64,000 bases of DNA, from the IMG/VR virus record IMGVR_UViG_3300042473_001540, positions 124,001-188,000 of that record; one strand, written 5' to 3'. Within the stretch, counting starts at the first letter, position 1, and every line of letters begins with the position of its first letter. The notes under the pieces are model-generated. The model had not been told where the DNA came from and did not search any database. It was given only the letters and a program-made list of their open reading frames with translations. Shown here in pieces: positions 8,018 through 63,337 of this stretch. A program made the position numbers and the translations under genes.

Positions 8018-8041
8018 CAAACCCAAAAATTCTGCTACAGT
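8014..8041 (+). promoter_or_regulatory. sigma70-type early promoter
   Basis: TTGACA-N16-TACAGT (GC before -10); AAGGAG SD before ATG 8064. Confidence 0.55.
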
Positions 8042-8063
8042 AAGGCTCAGAAGGAGACATCAT

Positions 8064-9789: not shown

Positions 9790-9790
9790 C

Positions 9791-10431: not shown

Positions 10432-10485
10432 GTTTTGACGCAACAGCAAACTATGTTAAAAAAGTGTGTAACACAGGAGACTCTG

Positions 10486-14171: not shown

Positions 14172-14267
14172 AATTTTGATTATGCAACAAATTTCTGGAG
14201 GGTTGCAATCCAATTCTCATGTTTACTGCCTTTGTATTGTGCTCACTGTCCAGACAATAAATATACT

Positions 14268-23948: not shown

Positions 23949-24228
23949 GGCTGCACTCAAAGCAAGGATACATTTTTATAGATCTTTGACTCAAAGATCT
24001 AAATGGATTGTAATGTTTTTTTTGGAGATTTTAGGTACAGCCAGCATACTGCTGGCTGTCGCCGTTTAAGCCTTTCAAATATTACCTTTGAGCACATTGT
24101 ATTTGTTTTGGTTGTTTGGCAGTGTAGCCTTGACCATCAGCAGTATTTTGCGTAAGAATCTATTACTCGCTGTAATGATGTTGTTTTATACAGGGTTGAA
24201 TTTATATGGATTATGGAGTTTTGGATGA
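23938..24228 (+). pseudogene. small 3-TM membrane protein gene interrupted by one in-frame TAA (24067-24069)
   Basis: Frame reads ...MFFLEILGTASILLAVAV*AFQILPLSTLYLFWLFGS...LNLYGLWSFG*; final TGA overlaps the polymerase ATG (ATGA). Confidence 0.7.
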
Positions 24229-26981
24229 CGTATGTTGATGCTATTTTGGAGAAAGACAAACACTGTATTCAAGTTGTGGAGCGTGTAAACCACAAACGAG
24301 TCTACAACACATATCCCAGCAAATACGTAATGTATTTTCCCAGTGAGCGTGGAAAATACACTAGCATTTATGGTGAACGGCTGGATAAATTTGAAACCAA
24401 TCGTTGGGAAGAGTTTCAAAGAGAGTGTCGCTTGGTTCCAAAAACACAACAATATGAAAGTGATAGCAATCCCATTTTCCGTTGTTTTTATGAACATTAC
24501 AAAAATACAGCAAGTCCACAGTTGCATGTGGCGTTTTTTGACTTGGAAACTGATTTTGATCCTGATCGGGGCTTCTCGTCAACTGACGAGGCGTTCAATC
24601 CCATTACAGCAGTATCTGTATATTTGAGTTGGCTGGGCAAAAACTTTACTCTTGTCCTCAAACCCAAAACACTCACAGTAGAGCAAGCATCAGCAGTTGT
24701 GGACAAATTTGAAGACACTGTGCTGTGTAGCAATGAAACTGAGCTATTGGATGTGTTTCTCACCCTCATTGAGGATGCAGATGTTCTCACAGGTTGGAAT
24801 TCAGAGGGTTATGATATTCCCTATTTGCACAATCGTATCATTCAAATTTTGAGTAAGGAGCACACTAAAAGGCTGTGTCTCTGGAACAAATTTCCCAAGA
24901 AAAGGGAGTATGAAAGCTATGGCAAGCCCACTATTACTTTTGATCTAGTGGGCAGAGTCCATCTTGACTATCTGCAACTGTACCGCAAGCATACCTATCA
25001 CGAGATGCACAGTTATCGACTGGACTTTGTGGGCGAGTATGAAGTGGGCGACAAGAAGATAGCTTACGAAGGCAGCTTGGACAAGCTCTATAACGAAGAC
25101 TTTGAAAAGTTCATTGCCTATAACAGGCAAGACGTTATGCTGTTGGTGAAAATTGATCGCAAGCTGAAATTCATTGATCTAAGCAATGATCTAGCACACA
25201 CAAACGGAGTGTTGATCCAAACAACAATGGGGTCAGTACAGCTTATTGACAATGCCATTACTAACGAAGCACATGATCTTGGCTTATGTGTTCCTACTCG
25301 ACGTAGAGACAATCCTGAAATCATGAAAGACGATCAGGGTGAAGACATTGAGCCCAATGGTATTGCTGGTGCATATGTGGCTGACCCAGTTGAAGGCATG
25401 CACAAATGGATTGGCGGTGTAGACATCAACAGTCTATATCCCAGTGCTATTCGAAGTTTGAACATGAGCAAGGAAACAGTAGTGGGGCAAATCCGCCCTG
25501 TGGGTAATGATCGTTTGATTCAACACAGGATGCAAAAGGAAAAACGCACTTTTGCTGACAGTTGGAACGAGATGTTTGGCATTATTGAGTATAACCAAGT
25601 GATGAATAGGGAAATGGTTATGCTGACTGTGGACTTTGAAGACGGCACCACTGTGGAACTCAGTGCTGACGAACTGTATCAATGGATTTTTGAAAATCCC
25701 AAAAAGCAAATGACGCTCAGTGCCAATGGCACTATTTTTGATCTCAACAAGGAAGGTGTGGTACCAGGCTTGCTGGCCCGCTGGTATGGTGAGAGAAAGG
25801 AGTTGCAGGCAGAAGCCAAAGCATGTTTCAAAAAAGCTGATGAAGAACCTAATCCCTCTAAGAAGAGTGAGTATCAAGAAAAAGCTGATTTTTATGACAG
25901 AAGGCAGTTGATTAAGAAAATTTTGCTAAATTCACTTTATGGAGCTATCGGAAATTCTAGCTCATCGTGGTTTGACAACCGTATTGCACAAAGTACTACT
26001 TTAACAGGTAGATGTATCGTCAAACACATGGGTAGTAAGATCAATGAGGTAATATCAGGGAAATATCACTACAAAGGTGATGCTGTCATATATGGCGACA
26101 CCGACAGCATTTATTTTAGCGCATATCCAGTAATGAGCCAGCTTGAAGACTTCAAAAGCTTTGATTGGAGTCGTGAAGCAGTGGTGCAACTGTATGATCA
26201 AGTTGCAGACATCACTAACCAAAGCTTTCCTGGATTTATGAAACAGGCATTCAATGTACCTGAATCCAGGAGTGTGATCAAAGCTGGCCGTGAACTAGTA
26301 GCAAGCCATGGATTGTTCATTACCAAAAAACGGTATGCTGTGATGATCTACGACAAAGAAGGCAAGCGAAAGGATGTAGATGGCAAGCCAGGTGAGATCA
26401 AAGTTATGGGGCTTGATCTCAAGAGAAGTGATACACCAAAACCAGTCCAGGACTTCTTGAGTGAGATTTTAACTTTGGTTTTGACTGAGGTTGACAAAGA
26501 CAGCATTTTCACGCGCATCAAGGAGTTCCGCACAGAGTTCAGCCAATGGCCCAGCTGGGCAAAAGGCAGCCCCAAAAGGGTGAATAACCTTACTCAATAT
26601 GGCATGATTAAGAAAGCTCAGGAAAGCGTTGACCTCAACAAAGACACTGGGAAAAGAAAAACTATTCCGGGCCATGTCCTTGCGAGCCTAAACTGGAACC
26701 TATTGTGTGAGATCTACAACGATTATGGATCAATGCGAATTCAAGACGGGCAAAAGGTGATTGTCTGTAAGCTGAGATCAAACCCTTTGGGTATGACATC
26801 TGTTGCATACCCTGTAGATCAACTGTATCTTCCTGATTGGTTCAAGTCTATGCCTTTTGACAACGCTCTTATGGAGGCCACAATTTTGGACAAGAAACTG
26901 GAAAACTTGTTGGGTGTATTGCACTGGAATCTTGAAGATGCCAAAAACAACGAAACTTTTGACAGCATGTTTAGTTTTTGA
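24225..26981 (+). CDS. family B DNA polymerase (T4 gp43-like)
   Basis: ExoI FFDLET, ExoII GWNSEGYD, ExoIII YNRQDV; DINSLYPS, KILLNSLYG, YGDTDS, KKRY. Confidence 0.97.
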   Translation: MTYVDAILEKDKHCIQVVERVNHKRVYNTYPSKYVMYFPSERGKYTSIYGERLDKFETNRWEEFQRECRLVPKTQQYESDSNPIFRCFYEHYKNTASPQLHVAFFDLETDFDPDRGFSSTDEAFNPITAVSVYLSWLGKNFTLVLKPKTLTVEQASAVVDKFEDTVLCSNETELLDVFLTLIEDADVLTGWNSEGYDIPYLHNRIIQILSKEHTKRLCLWNKFPKKREYESYGKPTITFDLVGRVHLDYLQLYRKHTYHEMHSYRLDFVGEYEVGDKKIAYEGSLDKLYNEDFEKFIAYNRQDVMLLVKIDRKLKFIDLSNDLAHTNGVLIQTTMGSVQLIDNAITNEAHDLGLCVPTRRRDNPEIMKDDQGEDIEPNGIAGAYVADPVEGMHKWIGGVDINSLYPSAIRSLNMSKETVVGQIRPVGNDRLIQHRMQKEKRTFADSWNEMFGIIEYNQVMNREMVMLTVDFEDGTTVELSADELYQWIFENPKKQMTLSANGTIFDLNKEGVVPGLLARWYGERKELQAEAKACFKKADEEPNPSKKSEYQEKADFYDRRQLIKKILLNSLYGAIGNSSSSWFDNRIAQSTTLTGRCIVKHMGSKINEVISGKYHYKGDAVIYGDTDSIYFSAYPVMSQLEDFKSFDWSREAVVQLYDQVADITNQSFPGFMKQAFNVPESRSVIKAGRELVASHGLFITKKRYAVMIYDKEGKRKDVDGKPGEIKVMGLDLKRSDTPKPVQDFLSEILTLVLTEVDKDSIFTRIKEFRTEFSQWPSWAKGSPKRVNNLTQYGMIKKAQESVDLNKDTGKRKTIPGHVLASLNWNLLCEIYNDYGSMRIQDGQKVIVCKLRSNPLGMTSVAYPVDQLYLPDWFKSMPFDNALMEATILDKKLENLLGVLHWNLEDAKNNETFDSMFSF

Positions 26982-29048: not shown

Positions 29049-29074
29049 TGGGCACCCCACAGTGCCCATTTTTT
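29049..29074 (+). terminator. intrinsic terminator
   Basis: TGGGCAC-N6-GTGCCCA followed by T6. Confidence 0.75.
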
Positions 29075-29085
29075 GGAGACTGCTT

Positions 29086-29616
29086 GTGCCAGTTGAACAC
29101 GAACGCAAAATGCTCCTGCGACCTGAAAGCCCGCAGGAGCTACTACGACATTTGAAACGCCAACCCCTTGTGCAAACCTTTGAAATAACACAGGGTTATA
29201 TCAACAAAAGTGCAAGAATTCGACATGTGGTACCACACAATGGTGATGCAGAAACGCATTGGTTCACTTTCAAAACCAAGGTTACTGGAAATACAGTGGA
29301 GATCGAAACAGAAATTTCAATCCACGACTATCACAAACTTTTCTTGATAGCTAAACCCGTAATCCACAAAACTCGCTGCAAGTTTCAAGAAGGGTTGAAC
29401 TGTTGGGACGTGGATTTTTTCAAAAATCCCAAAAGCGGCGACATTTATTTGAGCATGGCAGAAGTGGAAATGCCAGAATTTGAGTTAGACCTTCCTGAGG
29501 TTCATCCTCTCTTACAGGAGAATTTTTGGCGCTGGATTGACGCAAACGACAAGAGGTTTCAGAACAAGAATCTTAGTAACTATAAAAAAGTTTTGATGAA
29601 CCTGAAAGGTCTATAA
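29086..29616 (+). CDS. CYTH/triphosphate-tunnel metalloenzyme
   Basis: EHERK (ExExK), ITQGY, RIR, EIETEI, KTR, WDVDFF, AEVE. Confidence 0.85.
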   Translation: MPVEHERKMLLRPESPQELLRHLKRQPLVQTFEITQGYINKSARIRHVVPHNGDAETHWFTFKTKVTGNTVEIETEISIHDYHKLFLIAKPVIHKTRCKFQEGLNCWDVDFFKNPKSGDIYLSMAEVEMPEFELDLPEVHPLLQENFWRWIDANDKRFQNKNLSNYKKVLMNLKGL

Positions 29617-30404
29617 TGCCAAACAGCAAATATCGTAGCATCTTCATAAGCGATACGCATCTTGGTAGTCGTGCATGCCAAGCTGAGCTACTTGTGGAGT
29701 TTTTGAAACACAACTCCTGCCAAAATCTATACCTCGTTGGTGACATATTTGATTTGTGGAAATTGAAAAGCAGCAAATTCTGGCCACAAACACATAGCAA
29801 TGTGGTTCGAAGAATTCTCACTGCGGCCAAGAGAGGCACACAGGTGAGATATGTTTTAGGTAATCATGATGAGTACCTTCGAGCATGGATTCCAGACATA
29901 CACACTTTTGGCAACATTGAGCTGGGCAATGCCTTTGAACATCACTCTGTTCATGGGCAGAGATTTTTGGTAACACACGGTGATTTGTTTGACGGTGTAA
30001 TTCGATATCACAAATGGCTTAGCTTGATGGGCGACAAAGCACACAGTTTTTTACTGTGGTTGAACACACATTTGAATCATATGCGCCGGTTTTTTGGAAA
30101 AGATTATTGGAGTCTAAGTTCATACCTTAAAACAAACACGAAACAAGCTGTTGCATTTATCACCAAATACGAGCAACATGTAGTACAATATGCTCGGGAC
30201 GAAGCATTTCATGGAGTAATTTGTGGCCATATTCATTCTCCATCGTTGAAAACGTTTGAGGATGGGTTTGTGTATATGAATTGTGGTGATTTTTGTGAAA
30301 CTGTGTCAGCTTTGGTTGAAAACTTTGATGGCTCAATAGAGCTACTGGTTTACGACACTGAAACAAAAAGTATGATGACGAAAAACACATGGAGCCTTGA
30401 ATGA
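29616..30404 (+). CDS. metallophosphoesterase, UDP-2,3-diacylglucosamine hydrolase (LpxH)-like
   Basis: ISDTHLG, LVGDIFD, GNHD, HGDLFD, CGHIH, YMNCGD. Confidence 0.9.
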   Translation: MPNSKYRSIFISDTHLGSRACQAELLVEFLKHNSCQNLYLVGDIFDLWKLKSSKFWPQTHSNVVRRILTAAKRGTQVRYVLGNHDEYLRAWIPDIHTFGNIELGNAFEHHSVHGQRFLVTHGDLFDGVIRYHKWLSLMGDKAHSFLLWLNTHLNHMRRFFGKDYWSLSSYLKTNTKQAVAFITKYEQHVVQYARDEAFHGVICGHIHSPSLKTFEDGFVYMNCGDFCETVSALVENFDGSIELLVYDTETKSMMTKNTWSLE

Positions 30405-31393
30405 GACTTGTGATTGTTGATGACAACTGCCAAGACCAAGTGAATGGTGTTGTAACTACAATGAATGCAGTGAAAAAACAAATGTTTTCTCGAGGCATAC
30501 AGAATCTCATTCACATCACTCCTGATCAAATGATGTCTATGCCTGCATTGGTATATCCAGGTGCTCGCATACCATTGAATTTTTGGAATTTGAAAAAAAG
30601 AATAGAGGCGTATGAACCCACACACTTGCACATTTGTACAGAAGGTGTGCTGGGCTTAACTGCTAGGCAATTTTTTCAAAACAAAAATTGGCGCTACACA
30701 ACTAGCTTTCACACAAGATGGGATCACTATCTCAAGGAAAAATTTGGTGTGCCGGCCCTCAAAACCATGAGGTATCTCAAATGGTTTCATCAAAATAGTG
30801 CAGCAACTTTGGTCAACACTCCTACTATGCAAAGAGAGATGGTGTCGCTTGGCCTGTCTCAAGCCATCACATGGTCACGGGGAGTCAACACCCAACTGTT
30901 TCAATTTAATGACCGCAAGTGTGACACCAAGCCCACATTGTTGAGTGTTGGTCGAATCAGTGCTGAGAAAAATTTAGAGGTGTTTTGTAGCCTATCAGCA
31001 GAAAAATACAATCTAGTGTGTGTTGGTGATGGCCCTGATCTCAAGCGGTTACAGAACAAATACCCCTGGGTGACATTTACTGGGCAATTGAGCGGTAAGC
31101 AACTGGTACAGCAGTTCCAAAATGCTGACTGCTTTGTTTTCACCAGCAAAAGTGACACGTTTGGGTTGGTTATGATTGAAAGCATGAGTGTTGGTACTCC
31201 TGTTGCAGCATTTCCTGTGCAGGGTCCAATAGATGTTGTAGATGATGGGGTGACTGGTGTGCTAAATGAGGATATTCAGACAGCTATCTCGCAATGTTTG
31301 ACATTGAGTCGAAAAACTGTTTTTGAAGGCAGCAAGCGATGGAGTTGGGAAAAAACAACTGATATCTTTGTTGATACGCTGGTACCCAAATGA
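30401..31393 (+). CDS. GT4 family glycosyltransferase
   Basis: QVNGVVTT, EGVLG, VGRISAEKN, SDTFGLVMIESM..GTPV. Confidence 0.9.
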   Translation: MRLVIVDDNCQDQVNGVVTTMNAVKKQMFSRGIQNLIHITPDQMMSMPALVYPGARIPLNFWNLKKRIEAYEPTHLHICTEGVLGLTARQFFQNKNWRYTTSFHTRWDHYLKEKFGVPALKTMRYLKWFHQNSAATLVNTPTMQREMVSLGLSQAITWSRGVNTQLFQFNDRKCDTKPTLLSVGRISAEKNLEVFCSLSAEKYNLVCVGDGPDLKRLQNKYPWVTFTGQLSGKQLVQQFQNADCFVFTSKSDTFGLVMIESMSVGTPVAAFPVQGPIDVVDDGVTGVLNEDIQTAISQCLTLSRKTVFEGSKRWSWEKTTDIFVDTLVPK

Positions 31394-31617
31394 AACATAA
31401 AAAAACCATTCCATCAAATTTTCCCACTCTCAAATGTGTTGCATGCGGCACAAGCTGTGAGCCTTACAGGAAATACGTTTGTGACAATGATGGGGCAGTA
31501 GTCCATACTCAAAGTGACATTTGGCCAGAATATTTCCGTGACATGGGGACCACCCGTATTGAGTTTTGTAGTGCACAATGTGGCCTCAAATATTGCACAG
31601 TAAATCAATTGGTGTAG
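31390..31617 (+). CDS. small Cys-containing (zinc-finger-like) protein
   Basis: CVAC...FCSAQC; ATGA overlap with upstream gene. Confidence 0.6.
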   Translation: MKHKKTIPSNFPTLKCVACGTSCEPYRKYVCDNDGAVVHTQSDIWPEYFRDMGTTRIEFCSAQCGLKYCTVNQLV

Positions 31618-31673: not shown

Positions 31674-32045
31674 ATGACAGAACCAACTACAAGAAAAATC
31701 TACGTGACTTTTCAACGTGAAGGGATTCACAAGTATCCAGCAGCTGGAACTGACCCCTCCCTTGCAGATGTAAATTTTCTTCAATATCCGCATAGGCACA
31801 TGTTTCATTTCAAGGTTGGAATTGGCGTCAATCACCTAGACCGAGACATTGAATTTATCATTTTCAAGCGTTGGCTGGAAAGTCTCTATGGTGATGGTGT
31901 GATCCAACTGGATTTCAAAAGCTGCGAGATGATCGCCGAAGACCTCTACGCCCAAATCTCTGCTCGCTATCCAGGTCGTGCAGTGAGCATTGACGTTAGT
32001 GAAGATGGTGAGAATGGGGCTGTGCTAGCCTGGGACGCTGCATAA
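31674..32045 (+). CDS. T-fold QueD paralog (DpdL-like)
   Basis: LQYPHRHMF (LxxxHRHxF instead of QueD CxxxHGH), DIEF, SCEMIA, VSEDGENG. Confidence 0.75.
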   Translation: MTEPTTRKIYVTFQREGIHKYPAAGTDPSLADVNFLQYPHRHMFHFKVGIGVNHLDRDIEFIIFKRWLESLYGDGVIQLDFKSCEMIAEDLYAQISARYPGRAVSIDVSEDGENGAVLAWDAA

Positions 32046-32060
32046 CCACCAAGGATTGCT

Positions 32061-32122
32061 ATACAAAGTATTTGAGCGCCAGGAGATCGAGATAGGATTG
32101 TGCTGGCTCAAATACTTTGTAT
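32061..32122. repeat. 17-bp perfect inverted repeat forming a long intergenic hairpin
   Basis: ATACAAAGTATTTGAGC 32061-32077 / GCTCAAATACTTTGTAT 32106-32122. Confidence 0.85.
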
Positions 32123-32215
32123 TGGCGATAACCTTATAATTTTCAATGCTATAATTGTCAAAAACTCCTGTGGTTTATATACTATCTCTATTAGAGAATA
32201 TTTGAAGGATCAAAA

Positions 32216-33304
32216 ATGCCCAATGTATTTGTATGGCCTATCGAGCCATTGGATAATCGCTACACCCAACAATGGTATCACGAGATTCCGTTGCGGCTCC
32301 AAGAAATAGTTGGAAATGCAGCAAAAGTAATCCAACTTGATGGGGTCCAAAACACTACAAGCACCACATCTGGTGCATTTTTGAATTTCAGCGACACCAA
32401 CAGATGGAAAAGCACTCAACTGGTTGAGTTTCTCAACAAACATGATGCTGGAGAAACAACTCCAAATGATGTGCATTTGTTCACTGACGCTTGGAATCCA
32501 GTGATTCTGCAAGTCAAGTATATGAATGATCTCATGGGATATAATTGGAACATACAAGGTTACTGGCATGCTGGAGCATACGATCCCACTGATATCCTTG
32601 GATATAAAATGAGCAAACCGTGGCCCTGGCTAGCTGAGCAGGCACTGTTTCATGCCTGCGATGAGAATTGGTATGCAACAGATTTTCATAAAAAAATGTT
32701 TTTGAGCAATCTGGGCATCAGCAATGAATATCATCACAAAGCCAAAACTAGTGGGCAACCACACTCTGCTATTGTCAAACAAATGCAAGATATTATGCAG
32801 GACAGCCGAGAGAGGAAACAGGGCGTTATTTGGCCACACCGTTACAATCCAGATAAGCAGCCTGAAATTGCTGAAGATCTCTCCAACAGCATGAAACAGC
32901 CTTGGTGTATTACACAAAAAATGAATCTCAACAAAAGCAGTTATTACGAAAAGCTGGCTGACTGCCAAGTAATTTTTTCCTGTAGCTTGCATGAAAACTT
33001 GGGCATCAGTGTAATGGAAGCTGTGCTGGCAGATGTGATCCCAGTGCTGCCCAATCGGTGCAGCTACAGCGAAATGTATCATCCTGATTTTCTCTATCCC
33101 AGCAACTGGACTCAAGATTGGGAAAGTTATCAAACACACAAACAACAATTGACTGAATTTATTCAGTACAGATTGAATCACCCCAAAAAGTTCAGTAGGC
33201 AGTTGGAAAAGCAAAAGAAAGTGCTCTTACAAAAATATCTTTCAGCTAGCGTAATGTTTGAAAACATCAGCAACACAGTTGCTAGATCAACCACAGTAAA
33301 GTAA
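32216..33304 (+). CDS. GT-B glycosyltransferase, GTDC1/QTMAN-like C-terminal domain
   Basis: WPHRYNPDKQPE and YY..L....VIFSCSLHENLGISVMEAV...PVLPNRCSYSEM...FLY. Confidence 0.75.
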   Translation: MPNVFVWPIEPLDNRYTQQWYHEIPLRLQEIVGNAAKVIQLDGVQNTTSTTSGAFLNFSDTNRWKSTQLVEFLNKHDAGETTPNDVHLFTDAWNPVILQVKYMNDLMGYNWNIQGYWHAGAYDPTDILGYKMSKPWPWLAEQALFHACDENWYATDFHKKMFLSNLGISNEYHHKAKTSGQPHSAIVKQMQDIMQDSRERKQGVIWPHRYNPDKQPEIAEDLSNSMKQPWCITQKMNLNKSSYYEKLADCQVIFSCSLHENLGISVMEAVLADVIPVLPNRCSYSEMYHPDFLYPSNWTQDWESYQTHKQQLTEFIQYRLNHPKKFSRQLEKQKKVLLQKYLSASVMFENISNTVARSTTVK

Positions 33305-33313
33305 GATATATCT

Positions 33314-34972
33314 ATGACAAAACTTTCCAGCCCCAACCCACATTTGAAAAAAATTGATCAAAACATGCAACCTGTGGTGGGTAGAGACATGTGGACCACC
33401 AACAAGGACTATGCTATTTTTCTTCCTTCAATCTCAGCGATCTATGTGCGACTAGTAAGTCAGCCCAACGCTCGCACAGTCAAGGGGCTGCCGGGTGGAT
33501 TGCAGGATTTGGACTTTCTGCAAACCAATACCAACTTATTTTATTATCCCACTGCACTCTACAGCAGCGGTCACAGTTATTGGGATCCTGCTCAAAGTGA
33601 TATCCAAGAAGCTATGGTGCAAAAGCGAGACAAAAACGCCTCAGTAATTGTGGGCGACAGTGGTGGTTATCAGATTGCTACTGGCGTTCTCAAATGGCCT
33701 TGGCAGAAAAAAGAAAAGCAAACTGATCAAGACTGGATGAAGGACAAAGACGCCATTAGGATGAAAATCCTACGCTGGCTTGAACACACTTGTGACTACA
33801 GTATGGTATTAGATGTCCCCACAGGCAGCTTGTTGAAGTTTGGTAACGATCCCATCACAGGTGAGAACCTACATCCTGGGGTTAAGAACTTTAGAGACTG
33901 TCTTGAAAGCAGTATGGAGAATCACAACTTTTTCATCAAAAATCGTCGGGAAGGTAGTACACAATTTTTGAATGTGTTGCAGGGGCGCAATCAAGAAGAA
34001 GGTGACATTTGGTGGGACGTTGTGAAAGATCTTCCTTTTGAAACCTGGGCATTCAGTAATGTGCAAGCCAGCAACTTTGCTATAAATCTCCGTCGGATCA
34101 TTATCATGCGAGATGGCAAGTATTTGGATAACAGAGATTGGATCCATTATCTAGGCAATGGCAAAATCAAGGCAGGCTGCGCTCTTACTACACTTCAACG
34201 AGTGTGGAGAAAGCACATCAACGAGCGTACAACTCTCAGTTACGATGCAGCAAGTCCTTTTGTGAACGTAGCAAAAGGCAACATCTACTACAGTTGGGAA
34301 GTAAGTCCGCAAAGCATTGCATATAAAAACAACTCGTTGCCAGACAAAAAAGAGCTTAAGGGCAGTCAAGAACTGTTTCAAGACTGGATCAATCGCCACA
34401 ATCAAAAACATGCTGTTCGCGAAAGCAGCATTGGCAAGCGGATCACCATTGGTGATATCTGTGTCAAAGGTTATGAAGATCTCAATTTCAAAAAACAAGC
34501 TTTTTCACAAAAAGAGTTTGAAAGCTTGTTGTATCAACAAAGCTTGGAAGGCGTTCATGGCGAGAAGTTTCGCTACAGTGATGAATACAAACATTATCTT
34601 ATGCATGAGCACACTGACCACGGCAGCGGCATGTTTGATTGGGGCAAGAAAGAGTTTAAGGACCATGAAAAGTATCAGGTCAAATGGCCCAGCAGCATGG
34701 ATGGTCTCAGCTATGTGCTGGGCATGAGCCACAATGTTGAGCTTCATATTGAAGCTATTCAACATGCATGTGCAATGCAAGACCTGCCAATGGAGGAGAG
34801 GAAACATCACATCAGCGAAGACTTGATTGAATTTGCTGGGGGACTTTGTGAAGAGATCTTCACTAGTGAAAAACCCATGCAACTGATTGAAAAACATTCT
34901 GCTATGTTAGCCAAAATCACAGGAATGAACGCTGATAACAACATTGTCATGGATTTTGATGAATTTGAATAG
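33314..34972 (+). CDS. divergent guanine transglycosylase (TGT/DpdA superfamily)
   Basis: GDSGGYQI, LDVP, VLQG, HYLG, SYDAASP, HNV; no CxCxxC zinc site; flanked by QueD-like and folE genes. Confidence 0.75.
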   Translation: MTKLSSPNPHLKKIDQNMQPVVGRDMWTTNKDYAIFLPSISAIYVRLVSQPNARTVKGLPGGLQDLDFLQTNTNLFYYPTALYSSGHSYWDPAQSDIQEAMVQKRDKNASVIVGDSGGYQIATGVLKWPWQKKEKQTDQDWMKDKDAIRMKILRWLEHTCDYSMVLDVPTGSLLKFGNDPITGENLHPGVKNFRDCLESSMENHNFFIKNRREGSTQFLNVLQGRNQEEGDIWWDVVKDLPFETWAFSNVQASNFAINLRRIIIMRDGKYLDNRDWIHYLGNGKIKAGCALTTLQRVWRKHINERTTLSYDAASPFVNVAKGNIYYSWEVSPQSIAYKNNSLPDKKELKGSQELFQDWINRHNQKHAVRESSIGKRITIGDICVKGYEDLNFKKQAFSQKEFESLLYQQSLEGVHGEKFRYSDEYKHYLMHEHTDHGSGMFDWGKKEFKDHEKYQVKWPSSMDGLSYVLGMSHNVELHIEAIQHACAMQDLPMEERKHHISEDLIEFAGGLCEEIFTSEKPMQLIEKHSAMLAKITGMNADNNIVMDFDEFE

Positions 34973-34992
34973 CAATAACACAATTTTTGTGT

Positions 34993-35075
34993 TATAAATA
35001 GTCTGCTACATTACGGTAGCAAATTGGTGGAAACACCCGTTGTGCATAAACGACAGATGCTTTGAAAGGAAAGAT
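34993..35075 (+). promoter_or_regulatory. late promoter and structured leader of folE
   Basis: TATAAATA 34993-35000; TGCTAC/GTAGCA stem, GGTG-GAAA-CACC tetraloop, CGTT/AACG stem; AAGGA SD. Confidence 0.5.
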
Positions 35076-35756
35076 ATGAGCTATAATCGCACAAAATGTG
35101 ATCCTGAACTGGGTCGCAAAGTACATGAATACCTAGTTTCCAAAGGGGTTGAAACCCCAACAGTGGAAAATTCCCTAAGCCGCACAGACAAAATTGATAT
35201 TATTGAACGCAAGTTCAAGGACATCATGGAAACAATGGGCTTGAATCTATCAGATGATAGTTTGGCTGAAACGCCGACACGAGTGGCTCGCATGTTTATC
35301 CAGGAACTTTTTTGGGGTCTTGATTGGGAAGCTTTCCCCAAGTGCACCACTGTTGCCAACAAAATGGGCTATGATGAAATGGTGTGTGAACGAAATGTCA
35401 CTGTCAAAAGTGCCTGCGAACATCACTTCATTGTGATTGATGGTGTAGCAACTGTGGCTTATATTCCCAAAGAAAAGGTATTGGGCCTAAGCAAGATCAA
35501 TCGAATTGTCGAATACTTTAGCCGCCGACCACAAATTCAAGAGCGTTTGACTGAGCAGATCTTTCATGCAATGGAATATATCCTGGAAACCGATAGCATT
35601 GCTGTCGTCATTCACGGCAAGCACTATTGCGTAAGTCATCGTGGCGTTGAAGATGATTGCAGCAGCACAGTTACCAGCAAGCTGGGTGGTGCGTTCAAAC
35701 AGGATCCCAGTGCTCGTGCTGAATTTATGAAGATGGTTGACTTGACCTCTCTCTAA
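35076..35756 (+). CDS. folE: GTP cyclohydrolase I
   Basis: ETPTRVARM, SACEHHF, GLSKINR, RPQIQERLT, HYC...RG. Confidence 0.96.
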   Translation: MSYNRTKCDPELGRKVHEYLVSKGVETPTVENSLSRTDKIDIIERKFKDIMETMGLNLSDDSLAETPTRVARMFIQELFWGLDWEAFPKCTTVANKMGYDEMVCERNVTVKSACEHHFIVIDGVATVAYIPKEKVLGLSKINRIVEYFSRRPQIQERLTEQIFHAMEYILETDSIAVVIHGKHYCVSHRGVEDDCSSTVTSKLGGAFKQDPSARAEFMKMVDLTSL

Positions 35757-36080: not shown

Positions 36081-36535
36081 TGGCCTCTAATATTTTTAAG
36101 GTAACCAGTGTCTGTCAAGGCAGTGTAACCGGTATCACAGTGAATAACCTTGGATCAGGTTACACGGTTGGTACGTTACTGACATTTGGTAGCAGTAATG
36201 CCAGGCCTACTCAAGCATTGCGAGTTGACAATGACTATGGCGAAACCATCTTAAGCATCAGCATACAAGGTGAGGTCACTTGGCATCAAAACCATCCCAC
36301 TAAGGCAGCATCTAAGTTGGTAGACAGTTTGCAGAACTGCATTGACATAAAAGCCGCTGGGGAAGTAGCTATAGCAAGAAGTTATCTACAAGGGGTTAAA
36401 AAGTGTTTGAGGATAGCTAAACAAGTTTCCCATGAGGACCTGATTAGGCCATTGGAAACAGAAGTTGAGCATAGAGAAGGGAAACTCACTTGGCAGGCGT
36501 TAAACAACAGTTTGGAGAATCAAAATGACACATGA
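36080..36535 (+). CDS. hypothetical protein
   Basis: ORF coupled to both neighbours; N-terminal VTGITVNN.GSGY motif typical of phage structural repeats. Confidence 0.55.
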   Translation: MASNIFKVTSVCQGSVTGITVNNLGSGYTVGTLLTFGSSNARPTQALRVDNDYGETILSISIQGEVTWHQNHPTKAASKLVDSLQNCIDIKAAGEVAIARSYLQGVKKCLRIAKQVSHEDLIRPLETEVEHREGKLTWQALNNSLENQNDT

Positions 36536-37106
36536 AACCAGTAAAGCTGTTATGAGAAGGCTCTCTGACAGCAGATTTATTACTCGATATTTCGTAGGCA
36601 ATGGCATTGACATTGGTGCTGGGGATGACCCAGTCAGCAATTACAAAGATTTTTTTCCAGGAATGCAGCAGGTGAGAAATTGGGACCTACCTGATGGTGA
36701 TGCGCAGTTGATGGCAGGTGTAGCTGACAACAGTTTTGATTGGTTACTCAGCAGCCATTGTCTTGAGCACATGAGAGACCCTACAGAAGCTATGAGAAAC
36801 TGGAGCAGAATTTTGCAACCAGGTGGGCATATGGTCCTATTGGTTCCAGATGAAGACCTTTATGAACAAGGGGTTTTTCCCAGTCGTTTCAACTGGGATC
36901 ACAAAACTACTTGGACAATTCAAAAAAATCTCAGCTGGAGTCCTGTTTCTGTAAGCTGCACAAGTTTCCTAGCCAACTTTCCCGAACTCACTATCTTGAA
37001 GCTTGAGCTTTTGGATGCCAGTTATCGATACCATATTCAAAATCAAGATCAAACACTGACACCCATTGGTGAATCAGCTATCGAAATCATTCTTAGGAAA
37101 AAGTGA
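36525..37106 (+). CDS. class I SAM-dependent methyltransferase
   Basis: GIDIGAG, FD..LSSHCLEH, RILQPGG. Confidence 0.88.
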   Translation: MTHETSKAVMRRLSDSRFITRYFVGNGIDIGAGDDPVSNYKDFFPGMQQVRNWDLPDGDAQLMAGVADNSFDWLLSSHCLEHMRDPTEAMRNWSRILQPGGHMVLLVPDEDLYEQGVFPSRFNWDHKTTWTIQKNLSWSPVSVSCTSFLANFPELTILKLELLDASYRYHIQNQDQTLTPIGESAIEIILRKK

Positions 37107-37151
37107 CAATCTTGCACGACTCTGGTATAGTTTTGAAATAGTTTTCTTGGG

Positions 37152-37949
37152 TTGATTGTGCTGAAAAACTTCATAACCTATGCCACTGCTGGTGATATAA
37201 TATACAGTCTTTGTGCAGTAAAAATCCTTGGGGGTGGCAACATTTACCTCAAATTGGGATACCTTGATGAGTTTTGCCGAAATGTGTTGGGTTGGTACAA
37301 TCAGCCCTTCACAGGCAGAATAAGTGAAAAAGATTTTCAAAACATTGAAAGCCTGTTGTTACACCAAAGTTATTTGCATGAAGTGCAAATCTATACCAAC
37401 CAGCACATTGATTATGATTTAGCAGCTGAAAATTGGAAATTCATATTACCTTCTGGTTGGCAAGGTAATCAAACTCAAGCCTATGCCTTGGGACTGGGAT
37501 GGGATATGACTGACGTTCAATTGCAGCACCAGTTGTTGAGAGAGCCTTGGCTCACACAGGTTAGCCCAATCCTTATCCCCAATCGACCCATAGTAATCAA
37601 TCGAACACCTAGACATAGAGACAACAGTGCTACACAAAAATGGATGGATTTTATCAAACAAGGTCTGTGCAAGCAGGCTGTGTTTGTGGGCACACCTAGA
37701 GAACATCAAGAGTGGCAAACAGAGTTCAAGGAGACTATTGACTATTTTCCTACCCTAGATCTGTTGCATTTGGCACAGGTAATTCAAGGTTGTGAAATGT
37801 TCATTGGCAATCAAAGTGCGCCATTGGCTATAGCGATAGGTTTGGGCAAAAGCTATTGGTGCGAAGGCAATCGGGATACAAAAACACAAACTCCTCTAGG
37901 AGGCGGGGGCGATTGTTGGTTTGACCGCATAAATGGAAATTATTTTTGA
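37152..37949 (+). CDS. GT9 (heptosyltransferase)-like glycosyltransferase
   Basis: GDIIYSL, LLHLAQVIQGCEMFIGNQS..LAIA.GLG. Confidence 0.7.
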   Translation: MIVLKNFITYATAGDIIYSLCAVKILGGGNIYLKLGYLDEFCRNVLGWYNQPFTGRISEKDFQNIESLLLHQSYLHEVQIYTNQHIDYDLAAENWKFILPSGWQGNQTQAYALGLGWDMTDVQLQHQLLREPWLTQVSPILIPNRPIVINRTPRHRDNSATQKWMDFIKQGLCKQAVFVGTPREHQEWQTEFKETIDYFPTLDLLHLAQVIQGCEMFIGNQSAPLAIAIGLGKSYWCEGNRDTKTQTPLGGGGDCWFDRINGNYF

Positions 37950-38653
37950 TCGGGCAACACATGTATGGACTGCTGGTTGTTTACAACAACAATTTCTCAG
38001 AACTTTCAAAAATAACCTTGGACAAAAACAAAAAGCTGTATGCTCAGAGACACAATTATCATCTGTTTGAAAAAACCACTTGGACCAGTCACTTTGACAG
38101 AATCCATGCGGTGTTGGAACTTTTTGACACACACCCACATCTCAGTTGGCTTTGGTATACTGATACTGATGTTTTGATCACCAACTTCAAAACAACCATA
38201 CAAGAAAAAACTAGTGACACACATGATTTACTCATCTCAACTGATGTAAATGGCCTCAATACAGGCAGCATTTTATTTCGTAACTCAAGTCAGTGTCGGT
38301 CATTACTGCACGAGTTATTGAAAGTGGAAAAAGAAGCTTTGCAACATTGGGACTCAGAACAGTGGGCATTGAATCAGTTATTTGGGTTCCCCGGCACACA
38401 CCACCCAAGTTACCCGCAAGGCGAGTCTTTGAAAATTCCACATCCTTGGGACAAAACGATTCAAGTTGTGCCTCAACGAATGTTAAACAGCTATGATTAC
38501 AACCTATATCCTTATATACCAAAACCTGCCTTGGACAAACTGTTGACAGATGGCTCATGGCAGCCAGGCGATTGGGCTGTGCATTTTCCTGGTGTAAGTG
38601 AATCAGAAAAAATAAATTTGTGCAACAGTTGGCAAAACAAAATACTGTTGTAA
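37946..38653 (+). CDS. GT34 (GMA12/MNN10)-like glycosyltransferase
   Basis: NKKLYA.RHNY, WLWYTDTD (DxD), LNTGSILFRN, EQWAL, PGDWAVHFPG. Confidence 0.8.
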   Translation: MIGQHMYGLLVVYNNNFSELSKITLDKNKKLYAQRHNYHLFEKTTWTSHFDRIHAVLELFDTHPHLSWLWYTDTDVLITNFKTTIQEKTSDTHDLLISTDVNGLNTGSILFRNSSQCRSLLHELLKVEKEALQHWDSEQWALNQLFGFPGTHHPSYPQGESLKIPHPWDKTIQVVPQRMLNSYDYNLYPYIPKPALDKLLTDGSWQPGDWAVHFPGVSESEKINLCNSWQNKILL

Positions 38654-38671
38654 CTGCCAAAGGACAAAAAA

Positions 38672-39544
38672 TTGAAAGTATATGATTGTTTTACTTTTTT
38701 CAATGAGTTAGATCTACTTGAAATACGCCTTGAAGAGCTATGGGACGTTGTTGACTATTTTGTGTTAGCTGAATCAAATGTTACACATACTGGCATGTTC
38801 AAGCCCTTGTATTTTGATCTAAACAAACAACGCTTTGAAAAATATGCCCAGAAAATTCGTCACATTGTTGTTGATGACATGCCTGGCGGTGAAGACAACC
38901 TTTGGTTCAGAGAAAATCATCAACGCAGATGTCTTGCTCGAGGACTAGGAGACAAAAGCCCTGATGATTTGATCATTGTAACTGATGCCGATGAAATTCC
39001 TCGAGCATCAGTAGTTTCTAGCATAAAACATGATAGTCAGCACACTCGTTGGATTTTGTTTGCTCCACAGTATTTGTATAAATTAAATTACATGAGAATC
39101 AAAACCACAAATGGGGTAGATTGGCAAGCTGGTCCAAGTATTATTGTCTCAAAGTCTCAAGACTTTACTGACCCTCAAACAGAACGAACATTTACGTTTC
39201 CATGGGTTGGGTTGCCTGATGGCACAGCCTTTGTTGCGCATGGAGGTTGGCATTGGAGCTCATTGGGAAACAATCAGCATTGTATTCAAAAGATCAACAG
39301 TTTTGTTCATACAAATGAGAATATACCTGAAATAGTCGAAAACTTTGACATTGACAGATTTATAGCCACAAAAGGTAGCCATCACACCCCAGGACAGTTT
39401 TTTGAAACAGTGGAATTGAACAACTATTTTCCCAATTTTGTCTTATCCAATGCACAAAAATTCTCGCAACATGTTGCACCTGGGTTAGGTGTCAAAACAA
39501 GTGATATCTATCCTTTTGATACCCAACACACTTACAGAACATAA
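38672..39544 (+). CDS. GT17 (MGAT3-like) N-acetylglucosaminyltransferase
   Basis: YDCFTFFNELDLLEIRL, ESN.THTG..KPLYF, RENHQR, DADEIP, GGWHWS. Confidence 0.88.
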   Translation: MKVYDCFTFFNELDLLEIRLEELWDVVDYFVLAESNVTHTGMFKPLYFDLNKQRFEKYAQKIRHIVVDDMPGGEDNLWFRENHQRRCLARGLGDKSPDDLIIVTDADEIPRASVVSSIKHDSQHTRWILFAPQYLYKLNYMRIKTTNGVDWQAGPSIIVSKSQDFTDPQTERTFTFPWVGLPDGTAFVAHGGWHWSSLGNNQHCIQKINSFVHTNENIPEIVENFDIDRFIATKGSHHTPGQFFETVELNNYFPNFVLSNAQKFSQHVAPGLGVKTSDIYPFDTQHTYRT

Positions 39545-39560
39545 CAAGGGAGAAATAAAA

Positions 39561-40145
39561 ATGGACATGAGCCTTGAACAAATGCTGGCCCAAACAGGTA
39601 AGCGCCAAGCCAGCTTTGAAATAATGATAAATCATCTAAAACAAACTGCCAATCCGTTGATTGTTGAAACTGGATGCAGTCGCAGCCTACAACATGGATT
39701 CCACGGTGATGGTTTCAGTACAATAATTTTTGACAAGTATGTGGAAACTTTTTCTGGGCAACTATTGACAGTTGATTTGGATGAGTCTCATGTGAATTTT
39801 TCTCGCTCACAAGTGTGCTCAAACACACAAATTTTTTGTCAAGACAGTGTTGTTTGGTTACGAAATTTAAGTCAAAAGTTGCAGGCAGAAAACCGTCAGA
39901 TAAACTTACTCTATCTCGACAGTTTTGATTTTTACCCAGACAATCCTCATCCCAGTAGTTTTCATCATATGAAAGAATTGACTGCAATTTGGAGTTGTTT
40001 GGGTCCAGGCACAATGATTGCTGTGGACGATAATTTTGGTGACTCTTCTTCTCGGATAGGCAAAGGCAAGTATGTGGAAGAATTCTTTCAAAACATTTGT
40101 GTGCCGCTTGTATATGACGGCTATCAACTAGTTTGGCAGCTTTAA
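39561..40145 (+). CDS. SAM-dependent methyltransferase-like protein
   Basis: IVETG, TVD, DSV, LLYLDS, IAVDD, GKG. Confidence 0.7.
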   Translation: MDMSLEQMLAQTGKRQASFEIMINHLKQTANPLIVETGCSRSLQHGFHGDGFSTIIFDKYVETFSGQLLTVDLDESHVNFSRSQVCSNTQIFCQDSVVWLRNLSQKLQAENRQINLLYLDSFDFYPDNPHPSSFHHMKELTAIWSCLGPGTMIAVDDNFGDSSSRIGKGKYVEEFFQNICVPLVYDGYQLVWQL

Positions 40146-40207: not shown

Positions 40208-41089
40208 ATGTTTGGACGCAATGAGCTGGTTGGTGAACGTTACTTCAAAAATGCAGAAGATGAACTTTTTGTAACTAGTATTTTCACCACATTTCAGGGA
40301 GAAGGCCCATATCGAGGCGAGCCTGCTGTGTTTGTTAGGCTAGCCAAGTGCAATCTCCAATGTTCATTTTGTGATACTTTCTTTGATGATGGTGATTGGA
40401 TGACAATCCAAGAGATTGACTCCAAAATCGCAAAGAGCATCTCTGACAGCTTCAATGGTAATACCCCTCTTTGGGCTGATGTTGTGTATGGGGGTCCAGG
40501 AAGTGATCCTGTAAAGAAACGCAACATGGTTCTCGTGCTTACTGGCGGTGAGCCCATGCTACAAAAAAACATTGTTCCATTTTTAGAGCATATGAATACC
40601 CAGTTTGCCCGAACGCAAATTGAAAGCAACGGCACTATCGTCCAGAACATTCCTCAGGAAACTACCTTAGTAGTAAGTCCCAAGTGCAGTGAAAAAAATG
40701 GCCGTCCGGTGAAATATCTTGAACCACGAGCAGAAATGCTAGGAAGAGCAGACTGTTTGAAATTTGTAATGAGTGCAGATTCTGATACTCCTTACAATAA
40801 TGTCCCTGACTGGGCACACAACTGGCGGGACCAAACTGGTAAGAAGGTGTTTGTAAGTCCCATGAACATTTACAACCATGAACCGCAGAAAAGCAAGCAA
40901 ATTCGAGCTGAGAAAAATCAAATTAGTCTTGAAGAACGCAGTATTGTGGATGAAGTTGTGAGTTTTTGGACGCCAGGGCTTATCAATATGCAAACTGCTC
41001 AAGCCAATCACGAACACGCTGCTCGTTATTGTGTCCAGAACGGATTCGTCTTTAATATGCAATTGCATTTATTTGGAAGTTACGCCTAA
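40208..41089 (+). CDS. queE: 7-carboxy-7-deazaguanine synthase (radical SAM)
   Basis: IFTTFQGEG...G.PAVFVRL, CNLQCSFCDT, LTGGEP, ESNG, VSPK, QLH. Confidence 0.88.
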   Translation: MFGRNELVGERYFKNAEDELFVTSIFTTFQGEGPYRGEPAVFVRLAKCNLQCSFCDTFFDDGDWMTIQEIDSKIAKSISDSFNGNTPLWADVVYGGPGSDPVKKRNMVLVLTGGEPMLQKNIVPFLEHMNTQFARTQIESNGTIVQNIPQETTLVVSPKCSEKNGRPVKYLEPRAEMLGRADCLKFVMSADSDTPYNNVPDWAHNWRDQTGKKVFVSPMNIYNHEPQKSKQIRAEKNQISLEERSIVDEVVSFWTPGLINMQTAQANHEHAARYCVQNGFVFNMQLHLFGSYA

Positions 41090-41358: not shown

Positions 41359-41975
41359 GCAAGAATCTAAAAATCCCCTTTGGCCTTTGGCCAGGAAGTT
41401 GGGGTCTACGAGGTCGCACAAGACAAATTGCAGAAGCCGAATACACTATGCAGGGTCTTGACCTTGAGTTACGCTTGATTGAAATAAATGAGGAAGATCC
41501 TCTTCAGAAAGAGATCAAAACTCTCAAATCCAAAAAGAAATATGGGCAACTTACTGAGTATGAGTTTGACCAGCAAATATGCATGCTGACTACTGAAGAA
41601 ACCAGTGTTGATCGTGCAATAGCCCTGTTGGATGTTGAACTCAAACACAACAAAATTGATCGCAATGAGCATGAGAAGCAAACAGCTGAGGCCAAAAAAG
41701 AGCCTTGGGTAGCTATGCCCAACATCAGTTGGGACCCCACTGATCCGTCACGAAGCTTTTTTGAATTGGATTACAACAGTTATTTTGTGGAATTTCTCCG
41801 CAACCACGGTTATGAAGGTGCCAGTGAGCAAGAAGTAGTGGAAAAGTGGTTAACAGATGTTTGTCGAGCCGTAGCCTCAGATTTGGGCGAACAAGATGAT
41901 GCATTTGTTGCCACTGCTATACCAACTAACCGGAGAGCAAGGCGACCTAACAAACAGAAGACTGAATACAGTTGA
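41355..41975 (+). CDS. conserved phage hypothetical protein
   Basis: KEPWV...FFELDYN.YFVE.L...GY.G..E.EVVEKW..DVCR; AAGGA SD. Confidence 0.75.
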   Translation: MSKNLKIPFGLWPGSWGLRGRTRQIAEAEYTMQGLDLELRLIEINEEDPLQKEIKTLKSKKKYGQLTEYEFDQQICMLTTEETSVDRAIALLDVELKHNKIDRNEHEKQTAEAKKEPWVAMPNISWDPTDPSRSFFELDYNSYFVEFLRNHGYEGASEQEVVEKWLTDVCRAVASDLGEQDDAFVATAIPTNRRARRPNKQKTEYS

Positions 41976-41999
41976 CACACTGCCTAGCCTTGCTAGAGT
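41972..41999 (+). promoter_or_regulatory. sigma70-type early promoter
   Basis: TTGACA-N16-TAGAGT (GC before -10). Confidence 0.5.
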
Positions 42000-42024
42000 T
42001 GTGTCATATAGTGGAGATAGAACT

Positions 42025-63294: not shown

Positions 63295-63337
63295 TGTCAA
63301 TTTTGACACGTACACACATAATTGTACAAACTCTGCT

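Follow-up and report, generated by a model that had tools for sequence, protein, structure and literature searches.

A conserved glycosyltransferase within a jumbo-phage 7-deazaguanine DNA-modification cluster points to a putative sugar-decorated purine in phage DNA

We examined a 64,000-nucleotide stretch of DNA (the window; positions 124,001 to 188,000 of IMG/VR record IMGVR_UViG_3300042473_001540), in which an initial annotation, made from sequence alone, had described a 7-deazaguanine locus with an embedded glycosyltransferase (GT). The following features were identified:

24213-26981, + strand, family B DNA polymerase (Pfam), marking the replication module that houses the cluster
29062-31617, + strand, lineage-specific accessory block upstream of DpdL (Pfam): CYTH-like protein, metallophosphoesterase, GT4 glycosyltransferase (30401-31393) and small Zn-finger protein
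31674-32045, + strand, DpdL, a QueD/PTPS paralog and proposed 7-carboxy-7-deazaguanine decarboxylase, 123 aa
32216-33304, + strand, conserved GT-B/GT4-like glycosyltransferase (the embedded GT), 362 aa
33314-34972, + strand, divergent DpdA-like DNA-guanine transglycosylase (here called DpdAx), 552 aa, with no Zn-finger motif and an extra C-terminal helical region
35040-35756, + strand, GTP cyclohydrolase I (FolE)
36525-40145, + strand, lineage-specific accessory block between FolE and QueE (Pfam): methyltransferase (36525-37106), weak GT9-like protein (37152-37949), GT34 (37946-38653), GT17 (38672-39544) and Methyltransf_24-like protein (39489-40145)
40208-41089, + strand, divergent QueE-like radical-SAM enzyme (7-carboxy-7-deazaguanine synthase family)

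All five core open reading frames exist as first annotated, and the observation of this gene set is therefore confirmed. The DpdL protein carries LQYPHRHMF at residue 36, which fits the LxxxHRHxF signature defined for this family (PMC10516641), and it is 37% identical to phiST DpdL (E 8e-11), 55% identical to PA5oct EST35_0318 and matches phrog_17812 at 4e-35. Alignment with hhalign against a QueD alignment gave 79% probability (E 1.6e-5) over the C-terminal part only, while H19, H40, H42, E60, S83-C84-E85 and E110 are invariant. DpdAx carries DSGGYQ at residue 115 and has no CxCxxC motif, but has a TGT/DpdA fold with the catalytic Asp motifs conserved. FolE was identified with Pfam PF01227 (2e-60) and NCBIfam NF006824 (307.7 bits against a cutoff of 202), and the QueE-like protein with phrog_2076 (1e-49) and a CxxxCxxC motif at residue 48 (CNLQCSFC), although its best NCBIfam hits, which are QueE models, fall below their cutoffs. 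As the initial annotation had claimed, no QueC or canonical QueD was found in the window, since phmmer searches with the ACP17 and RHph_I1_18 QueD and the X1 PAPS-reductase-like protein gave no hit at E<=10 and there is no CxxxHGH motif; QueF, likewise claimed to be absent, was not seen, although without a dedicated search.

We next examined the GT, which the initial annotation had likened to GTDC1/QTMAN, the enzyme that mannosylates queuosine in animal tRNA. The protein carries WPHRYNPDKQPE at residue 206, HENLGISVMEA at 259, PVLP at 276, YSEM at 284 and FLY at 292, and it keeps the E-x7-E motif (E260-x7-E268) and the invariant Arg, His, Gly and Glu residues of active GT4 enzymes. Pfam Glycos_transf_1 is weak here (16.6 bits against a cutoff of 26.4). 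However, an AF2 model (pLDDT 87.5) compared with the PDB using Foldseek gave GT4 enzymes at about E 1e-8, and in a search of Swiss-Prot models QTMAN orthologs took rank 1 and six of the top eight places. QTMAN is thus the best named structural match and, like the activity proposed here, puts a hexose on a 7-deazaguanine-derived base within a nucleic acid, but the resemblance is only partly borne out, as other GT4 enzymes score almost as well, sequence identity is 11–15%, and the Pfam QTMAN_N domain (PF12038) is not detected in any of 31 family members. The structural match might suggest QTMAN-like glycosylation of a queuosine-type base in host or phage tRNA, but we consider this very unlikely. 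The window has no tRNA genes and no QueC, and QueA, QueG and QueF were not seen, so the cyclopentenediol of queuosine that serves as the QTMAN acceptor cannot be made by these genes, while the partner transglycosylase is homologous to phage DpdA proteins and the DNA of the related phage PA5oct is itself G-modified.

We then assessed whether the GT is syntenic with the transglycosylase gene in relatives, a lack of which had been set beforehand as grounds for rejecting the interpretation, and the linkage clearly held. The GT family is large, and its close subfamily is almost confined to phage contigs, with one hit in 185,579 species genomes, on a contig that carries the same cluster. In three IMG/VR samplings the GT sits inside DpdL-type 7-deazaguanine clusters. 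Among near GT relatives, DpdL (within 10 kb of the GT), DpdA and FolE were present in 76, 72 and 71 of 83 loci, respectively, among distant GT relatives (33–52% identity) DpdL (within 10 kb), FolE and DpdA were present in 74, 62 and 56 of 80 loci, respectively, and among DpdL-seeded loci the GT was present in 76 of 78, with a median gap of 556 bp. All 887 core-gene pairs lie on the same strand as the GT, although seven different orders of the four core genes occur. These loci are from related phages and the counts are not independent events, but the same arrangement also occurs in five cultured phage lineages of different sizes and taxa: PA5oct, ACP17, Xanthomonas X1/BUDD, Burkholderia BCSR5 and Sinorhizobium Phosso. 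As the same gene set recurs in hundreds of related loci, this is not a chance arrangement.

It is also possible that the GT has a target unrelated to 7-deazaguanine, such as another modified base, a phage or host protein, or the host envelope, and lies beside these genes only because both belong to the same early, replication-linked module. The window does hold many other GTs and methyltransferases, and a more distant GT4 relative in Xanthomonas phage PhiXhv-12 lies beside GlmS and a deacetylase and not beside deaza genes. However, adjacency survives seven gene orders, five cultured lineages and 33–100% sequence divergence, DpdL predicts the GT in nearly all DpdL-seeded loci, and no hydroxymethylase was seen among the window ORFs scanned, and we therefore regard this reading as quite unlikely.

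Examination of the neighbouring genes showed that in 145 of 248 loci nucleotide-sugar genes are interleaved with the deazaguanine genes, and these encode SDR epimerase/dehydratase, rfaE-domain-II-like nucleotidyltransferase, DegT aminotransferase, eukaryotic-type phosphomannomutase and HIT proteins. They are 6.7 times denser inside the cluster span than in the flanks. In the window, the slot that holds nucleotide-sugar genes in other relatives is occupied by the block between FolE and QueE, which is shared only with the nearest relatives (loci L011, L012 and L017) and may elaborate the sugar further, although its membership in the pathway is inferred. The genes of the block upstream of DpdL are present in only 7–9 of 78 related loci and a link to the pathway is speculative.

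The closest described system is the DpdL/DpdA3 system of Cellulophaga phage phiST (Cui et al. 2023, PMC10516641), which has FolE, QueD, QueE and DpdL with the same LxxxHRHxF signature, a TGT-superfamily DNA transglycosylase and no QueC, and which likewise lies next to the polymerase genes. However, phiST has no GT homolog and carries a P-loop AAA_18 ATPase in the position the GT holds elsewhere, its 259-aa DpdA3 shows no detectable similarity to DpdAx (hhalign probability 0.2%), and its DNA contains plain dDG, which indicates that DpdL chemistry does not require a GT. Expression of ACP17 dpdL plus dpdA without the GT gave no dDG, and the authors suggested a missing enzyme (PMC10516641), a result that also supports the model proposed below, while DpdL plus DpdA alone failed to make dDG in E. 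coli for both ACP17 and phiST. The GT could work in the biosynthesis of the deazapurine but leave no sugar in the DNA, for example by transiently glycosylating or activating CDG or a nucleotide intermediate so that DpdL can act, with plain dDG as the final base. The near-constant adjacency of DpdL and the GT, the ATPase in phiST, which would fit interchangeable activating partners, and a phosphoribosyltransferase (PRTase) in 97 of 248 loci, which hints at chemistry on nucleotides, are in keeping with this. Nonetheless, we consider it unlikely, as the cluster-encoded sugar-tailoring enzymes (aminotransferase, epimerase/dehydratase and phosphomannomutase), which vary between phages, would be pointless if the sugar were discarded, and decarboxylation of a pyrrole carboxylate needs no glycosyl activation.

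In Pseudomonas jumbo phage PA5oct (Wroclawvirus), the uncharacterised G-modification cluster EST35_0316 to EST35_0322 encodes orthologs of the transglycosylase (30% identity), the GT (35%), DpdL (55%) and QueE in the same module, and the polymerase, clamp-like protein, cluster and RNaseH/5'-3' exonuclease (41896-43005 in the window) are syntenic between the two. However, its gene order is DpdA-GT-DpdL, it adds a truncated SDR-like protein and a phosphoribosyltransferase, and it lacks the extra GT and methyltransferase blocks of the window. PA5oct DNA resists five G-containing restriction enzymes and is targeted by END nucleases, which sense hypermodified DNA (PMC12191111), and both observations support the model proposed below, but the END nucleases also target preQ0- and archaeosine-bearing phages, so their targeting does not discriminate between a glycosylated and a plain deazapurine.

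Taken together, we suggest that this is the replication-module DNA-hypermodification cluster of an uncultured jumbo phage (about 330 kb) distantly related to PA5oct. In this model FolE, a QueD encoded elsewhere or supplied by the host, and QueE would make 7-carboxy-7-deazaguanine, by established chemistry that is inferred here, and DpdL would convert it, by the published but unproven proposal, to 7-deazaguanine. DpdAx would then swap the deazapurine for guanine in phage DNA after replication, as inferred from its fold and conserved catalytic Asp residues, and the GT would transfer a sugar from a nucleotide-sugar onto the deazapurine, most likely on DNA and possibly before insertion, to yield a glycosylated 7-deazaguanine that blocks restriction. 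The sugar would probably differ between phages according to the nucleotide-sugar genes interleaved in their clusters, and in this phage may be extended or methylated by the extra GTs and methyltransferases. While gene identities, folds, motifs and linkage are demonstrated by our analysis, every chemical step, the acceptor atom and the order of the steps are inferred. Furthermore, plain 7-deazaguanine has no hydroxyl group, so the acceptor would have to be unusual (C7/C8, N2 or the carboxylate of CDG), or DpdL would have to do something other than decarboxylation. Although this is the most likely function, we hold it with no more than even confidence, and the initial interpretation of a sugar-decorated 7-deazaguanine in DNA (or tRNA) is supported only in part, with its gene identities correct and its central claim still an inference. 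We found no published description of such a modification.

A variant of this model is that the GT glycosylates the free deazapurine base, or a PRTase-made nucleotide, before incorporation, with the enlarged DpdA-like enzyme or the polymerase then installing the pre-glycosylated unit, so that the DNA is still glycosylated. DpdAx has large insertions and an extra C-terminal region compared with the 259–446 aa DpdA3-type enzymes, the GT is not basic (pI 6.5), which also counts against our main model, and PRTase genes are embedded between FolE and QueD/QueE in relatives. However, ACP17, X1 and BCSR5 combine the same GT with shorter DpdA proteins, the known DNA and tRNA base glycosyltransferases (T4 alpha/beta-GT and QTMAN) act on the polymer, and a PRTase could equally well salvage the guanine that DpdA releases, making this order of steps unlikely.

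The T4 alpha- and beta-glucosyltransferases (glucosyl-hmC), and related hmC/hmU sugar modifications, are comparable in that these phage GT-B enzymes decorate a non-canonical base in DNA after replication to evade restriction, with a sugar that varies between phages. They do, however, act on a pyrimidine hydroxymethyl acceptor, belong to other GT families and are not among the top 50 structural matches to the GT. The deazapurine nucleoside antibiotic pathways (toyocamycin, tubercidin) make free nucleosides and have no DpdA or GT, and the window itself shows no PRTase in the cluster, but these pathways combine FolE, QueD and QueE with a phosphoribosyltransferase, as do the 97 PRTase-bearing loci among the 248 relatives.

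The window contains five co-directional ORFs matching those described in the initial annotation, which confirms its observation, while its interpretation, a sugar-decorated 7-deazaguanine made with the help of a QTMAN-like enzyme, is partly supported. One of the five encodes the divergent transglycosylase DpdAx and the other four are as follows:

31674-32045, DpdL family member (QueD paralog), 123 aa
32216-33304, GT-B/GT4-like glycosyltransferase (GT), 362 aa
35040-35756, FolE, canonical
40208-41089, QueE, divergent but recognisable

The 31674-32045 product carries LQYPHRHMF at residue 36, which is exactly the LxxxHRHxF signature, replacing the QueD motif CxxxHGH, by which Cui et al. 2023 (PMC10516641) defined DpdL, a QueD paralog proposed but never shown to decarboxylate 7-carboxy-7-deazaguanine (CDG). 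Using tblastn it is 37% identical to the founding DpdL of Cellulophaga phage phiST (CGPG_00067/gp040) over 93% of the query (E 8e-11). It gave no hit to Pfam, including the T-fold/PTPS model PF01242, or to NCBIfam, and hhalign against phage QueDs gave 79% probability and E 1.6e-5, but over 42 C-terminal columns only. Alignment of the DpdL family showed invariant His, Glu and S-C-E residues, with the S-C-E motif at residues 83-85 of the window protein and invariant E60 and E110 in addition to the three His residues. The QueD catalytic Cys is lost in this family but another Cys is strictly conserved, while PA5oct and Aeromonas phage Ahp1 have HFH instead of HRH. As expected of a DpdL locus, FolE, QueE and a DpdA-like protein are encoded alongside, and no QueC or canonical QueD was found in the 64 kb. 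An HGHSF match at 13748-14107 lies inside the opposite-strand Sir2 gene and is a chance match.

DpdAx has a predicted TGT-type TIM-barrel fold, and D115 (in DSGGxQ), D167 and D311 (in an S-x-D motif) are invariant across DpdAx and the ACP17/X1-type DpdA proteins. DSGG and the LD motif align to QTRT1, while equating D311 with the TGT nucleophile is our inference. There was no hit to Pfam (including PF01702), NCBIfam or PHROG, and no PDB hit even with the family profile. Homology to TGTs is reached only through the 410-446 aa DpdA proteins of phages ACP17, X1 and BCSR5, to which the DpdAx family is clearly homologous (hhalign 99.9%, E 5e-36) and whose profile reaches TGT/QTRT1 by sequence. The Zn-binding CxCxxC...H site of tRNA TGTs is absent, with no CxCxxC motif and only six scattered Cys residues. 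Comparison with phiST DpdA3 (gp042), the only DpdA subfamily reference used (DpdA1, DpdA2, DpdA4 and bDpdA were left out), gave an hhalign probability of 0.2%, and we therefore do not assign DpdAx to the phiST/Campylobacter-type DpdA3. Within the TGT/DpdA superfamily it instead forms a long, zinc-less branch related to the ACP17/X1-type DpdA.

The GT was modelled with confidence (pLDDT 87.5) and is predicted to adopt a two-Rossmann GT-B fold, with the GT4 enzymes BshA, glycogen synthase, MshA, WaaG and PglA as its nearest PDB structures (E 1e-8 to 1e-5; TM about 0.6). An E-x7-E motif is present at E260 and E268, and Pfam Glycos_transf_1 (PF00534) matches 29 of 31 family members (best E 3e-6), although the window protein scores only 16.6 bits against a cutoff of 26.4. 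In Swiss-Prot models QTMAN takes rank 1 and six of the top eight places (E 5e-11 to 2e-8), but YqgM and PimB score equally well; it takes ranks 6 and 18 among AFDB clusters, and the Atlas structural neighbour has TM 0.73. The QTMAN_N domain (PF12038) gave no hit in any of the 31 family members at E<=10, and for this reason we do not assign the GT to QTMAN. The initial annotation had put forward a WPHR(W/Y)xxDKxPE-type motif as shared with QTMAN/GTDC1; within the phage family this is conserved as (W/F)PHR..(D/E)KQP. Ancestry from T4-type DNA glucosyltransferases was also considered and rejected, as neither alpha-GT nor beta-GT is among the 50 best Foldseek PDB matches. Single-sequence and profile searches of PDB with the GT, DpdAx and DpdL gave no meaningful hit, and megablast of the region against GenBank phages found nothing. 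A HMMER search of 1.84 billion representatives returned only the family itself among the best 150 hits (all E<1e-48), which do not extend to the boundary with QTMAN.

The same sequence occurs on IMG/VR contigs of up to 328,603 bp, so this is a jumbo phage. The order polymerase, clamp-like protein, cluster and RNaseH-like exonuclease is syntenic with Pseudomonas jumbo phage PA5oct, where EST35_0316, EST35_0317 and EST35_0318 are the transglycosylase, GT and DpdL orthologs (30%, 35% and 55% identity, respectively), and QueE is EST35_0322.

We next assessed whether the GT keeps its position beside the deazaguanine genes in relatives, as loss of synteny had been named in advance as grounds for refutation. 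Among 80 IMG/VR loci found with the close GT family, plus three cultured phages, DpdL lay within 10 kb of the GT in 76 of 83, the transglycosylase in 72 and FolE in 71. Among 80 loci found with a distant GT subfamily (33-52% identity to its seed), DpdL was present in 74, FolE in 62, a DpdA in 56 and QueE in 55. Likewise, starting instead from a narrow DpdL alignment, 76 of 78 loci carried the GT, at a median distance of 556 bp. Every core gene lies on the strand of the GT (887 of 887 pairs), and the four core genes occur in seven different orders. The GT also lies inside the deazaguanine cluster in Acidovorax phage ACP17, Xanthomonas X1/BUDD, Burkholderia BCSR5 and Sinorhizobium Phosso. These loci are related phages and not independent events, but linkage that persists through rearrangement, across genome sizes from 156 to 469 kb, argues for a shared function.

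The GT family is large, with about 403 clusters at 50% identity with E<1e-30, while the close GT subfamily is almost confined to phage contigs. A search of 185,579 species genomes with a narrow GT alignment gave one hit, on a 49-kb contig (JAHFUM010000010.1) of a MAG labelled Nitrosarchaeum sp., which carries FolE-DpdA-DpdL-GT and QueD and is probably a phage contig binned into an archaeal MAG. Contigs recovered for two distant GT members were only about 1.5 kb in size. A more distant GT4 relative in Xanthomonas phage PhiXhv-12 (6740-7843 of that locus; 24% identity over 58% of the query) lies beside GlmS and a BshB-like deacetylase and not beside deazaguanine genes, and the link to deazaguanine clusters therefore belongs to this orthologous group and not to all phage GT4 enzymes.

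Clustering all ORFs of 248 loci against each other revealed, besides the core genes, further families interleaved with the deazaguanine genes. These were an SDR epimerase/dehydratase (68 loci), a cytidylyl/adenylyl-transferase resembling RfaE domain II (55 loci), a DegT-type sugar aminotransferase (42 loci), a eukaryotic-type phosphomannomutase (26 loci), a HIT protein (52 loci) and a phosphoribosyltransferase (97 loci). At least one nucleotide-sugar gene is present in 145 of 248 loci, and their density in the non-core space within the cluster is 2.28 per 10 kb, against 0.34 in the flanks. Typical orders are DpdA-DpdL-NT-GT-FolE-PRT and DpdL-SDR-DegT-DpdA-GT-FolE-PMM-PRT-QueD-QueE. The phosphoribosyltransferase is small (PF00156, XPRT-like), is embedded between FolE and QueD/QueE in many clusters, and includes EST35_0321 of PA5oct (12955-13389 of that locus), but it is not present in the cluster of the window. 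It may indicate nucleotide-level chemistry, making a deazapurine nucleotide as in tubercidin and toyocamycin biosynthesis, or simply salvage of the guanine released by DpdA.

The window phage lacks these nucleotide-sugar genes in its cluster, and in the same slots it has two lineage-specific blocks that are shared only with its nearest relatives:

29062-31617 (+), upstream block: CYTH-like protein, metallophosphoesterase, GT4 and a 75-aa Zn-finger protein
36525-40145 (+), block between FolE and QueE: methyltransferase, weak GT9-like protein, GT34, GT17 and a Methyltransf_24-like protein

GT34 and GT17 are families known mainly from eukaryotes. Elsewhere in the window lie a NodU/CmcH-type carbamoyltransferase (49264-50961, -), another GT1-family glycosyltransferase (52678-53586, -) and a full-length DegT/DnrJ/EryC1 sugar aminotransferase (2600-3904, +), which together would allow amino-sugar synthesis and O-carbamoylation of a sugar.

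In the mechanism we consider most likely, FolE, QueD and QueE would make CDG, as in the established pathway, DpdL would transform it, by the published proposal through decarboxylation, the DpdA-like enzyme would exchange the deazapurine for guanine in DNA, and the GT would transfer a sugar from a nucleotide-sugar to the deazapurine. The gene identities, motifs, predicted folds and linkage are results of this analysis, whereas each catalytic step in these phages is inferred, including CDG decarboxylase activity, which is unproven even for the founding DpdL. A glycosylated final product is favoured as the GT appears catalytically intact, judged from sequence and model, and as tailoring enzymes for the donor sugar are cluster-encoded and vary between phages. 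A further point is the first rank, shared closely with other GT4 enzymes, of QTMAN, which mannosylates a 7-deazaguanine base in tRNA. Indirect experimental support comes from published work on PA5oct (PMC12191111), albeit without nucleoside analysis, and from ACP17, where dpdL plus dpdA expressed without the GT gave no dDG and the authors suspected a missing enzyme (PMC10516641).

However, this model is proposed without chemistry for any GT-bearing phage, and 7-deazaguanine lacks a hydroxyl group, meaning that the acceptor could be C7/C8, N2 or the carboxylate of CDG, or that DpdL may do something else in these phages. In addition, the GT is not basic. In phiST, whose DNA contains plain dDG and which has DpdL, a short DpdA3 and no GT, an AAA_18 P-loop ATPase/kinase-like gene (gp041; 9311-9808 of that locus) sits between DpdL and DpdA3, the position held by the GT in other phages, and a biosynthetic, non-decorating role for the GT therefore cannot be excluded. 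Modification of tRNA was also considered and rejected as unlikely, with no QueC, canonical QueD or tRNA genes found in the window.

The system would work like a DpdL/DpdA deazaguanine DNA-modification pathway combined with a base-glycosylation step, as in T-even phages or QTMAN. 7-Deazaguanine DNA modifications and sugar-decorated pyrimidines are each established phage counter-defences, but literature searches aimed at this question, in a library that does not cover most subscription journals, found no report of a glycosylated 7-deazaguanine in DNA or of a role for this GT. A broader possibility, which we hold only tentatively and consider somewhat less likely than not, is that a large group of phages, many of them jumbo phages (more than 590 matching stretches in IMG/VR and about 400 protein clusters at 50% identity with E<1e-30), replace guanine with a glycosylated 7-deazaguanine, which would be the first sugar-bearing purine in DNA. 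In this view, the sugar would be diversified by cluster-encoded nucleotide-sugar enzymes (mannose-, heptose- or glycerol-phosphate-, amino- and deoxy-sugar routes), while in the window phage three further GTs and two methyltransferases might build it into a methylated oligosaccharide, and the linkage might be a C- or N-glycoside or an acyl glycoside on the carboxy derivative. The gene signature of DpdL, a GT4-type GT and a DpdA, often with nucleotide-sugar genes, is abundant in environmental phages and also occurs in culturable phages, including the therapy candidate PA5oct, which makes the proposal highly testable. It may also explain why DpdL plus DpdA from ACP17 could not be reconstituted without further enzymes, would define a new substrate class for type IV, END and glycosylase defences, and could supply new enzymes for site-specific glycosylation of purines in DNA.

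Outside the cluster, a 1242-aa ORF (14893-18621, +) combines several GNAT acetyltransferase domains with a dCMP/cytidine deaminase domain, an unusual fusion for a phage that might bear on nucleotide or DNA modification. The window also encodes a glutathionylspermidine-synthase-like protein (7956-9215, +; E 7e-140) and a Sir2-family protein (13440-14213, -), both uncommon phage cargo, together with a UvdE UV-endonuclease (10435-11511, +) and an ATP-dependent DNA ligase (5229-6578, +). On the minus strand there is a 2376-aa ORF (53598-60728), and an ORF at 62288-63319 with three NUMOD3 motifs is probably a homing endonuclease.
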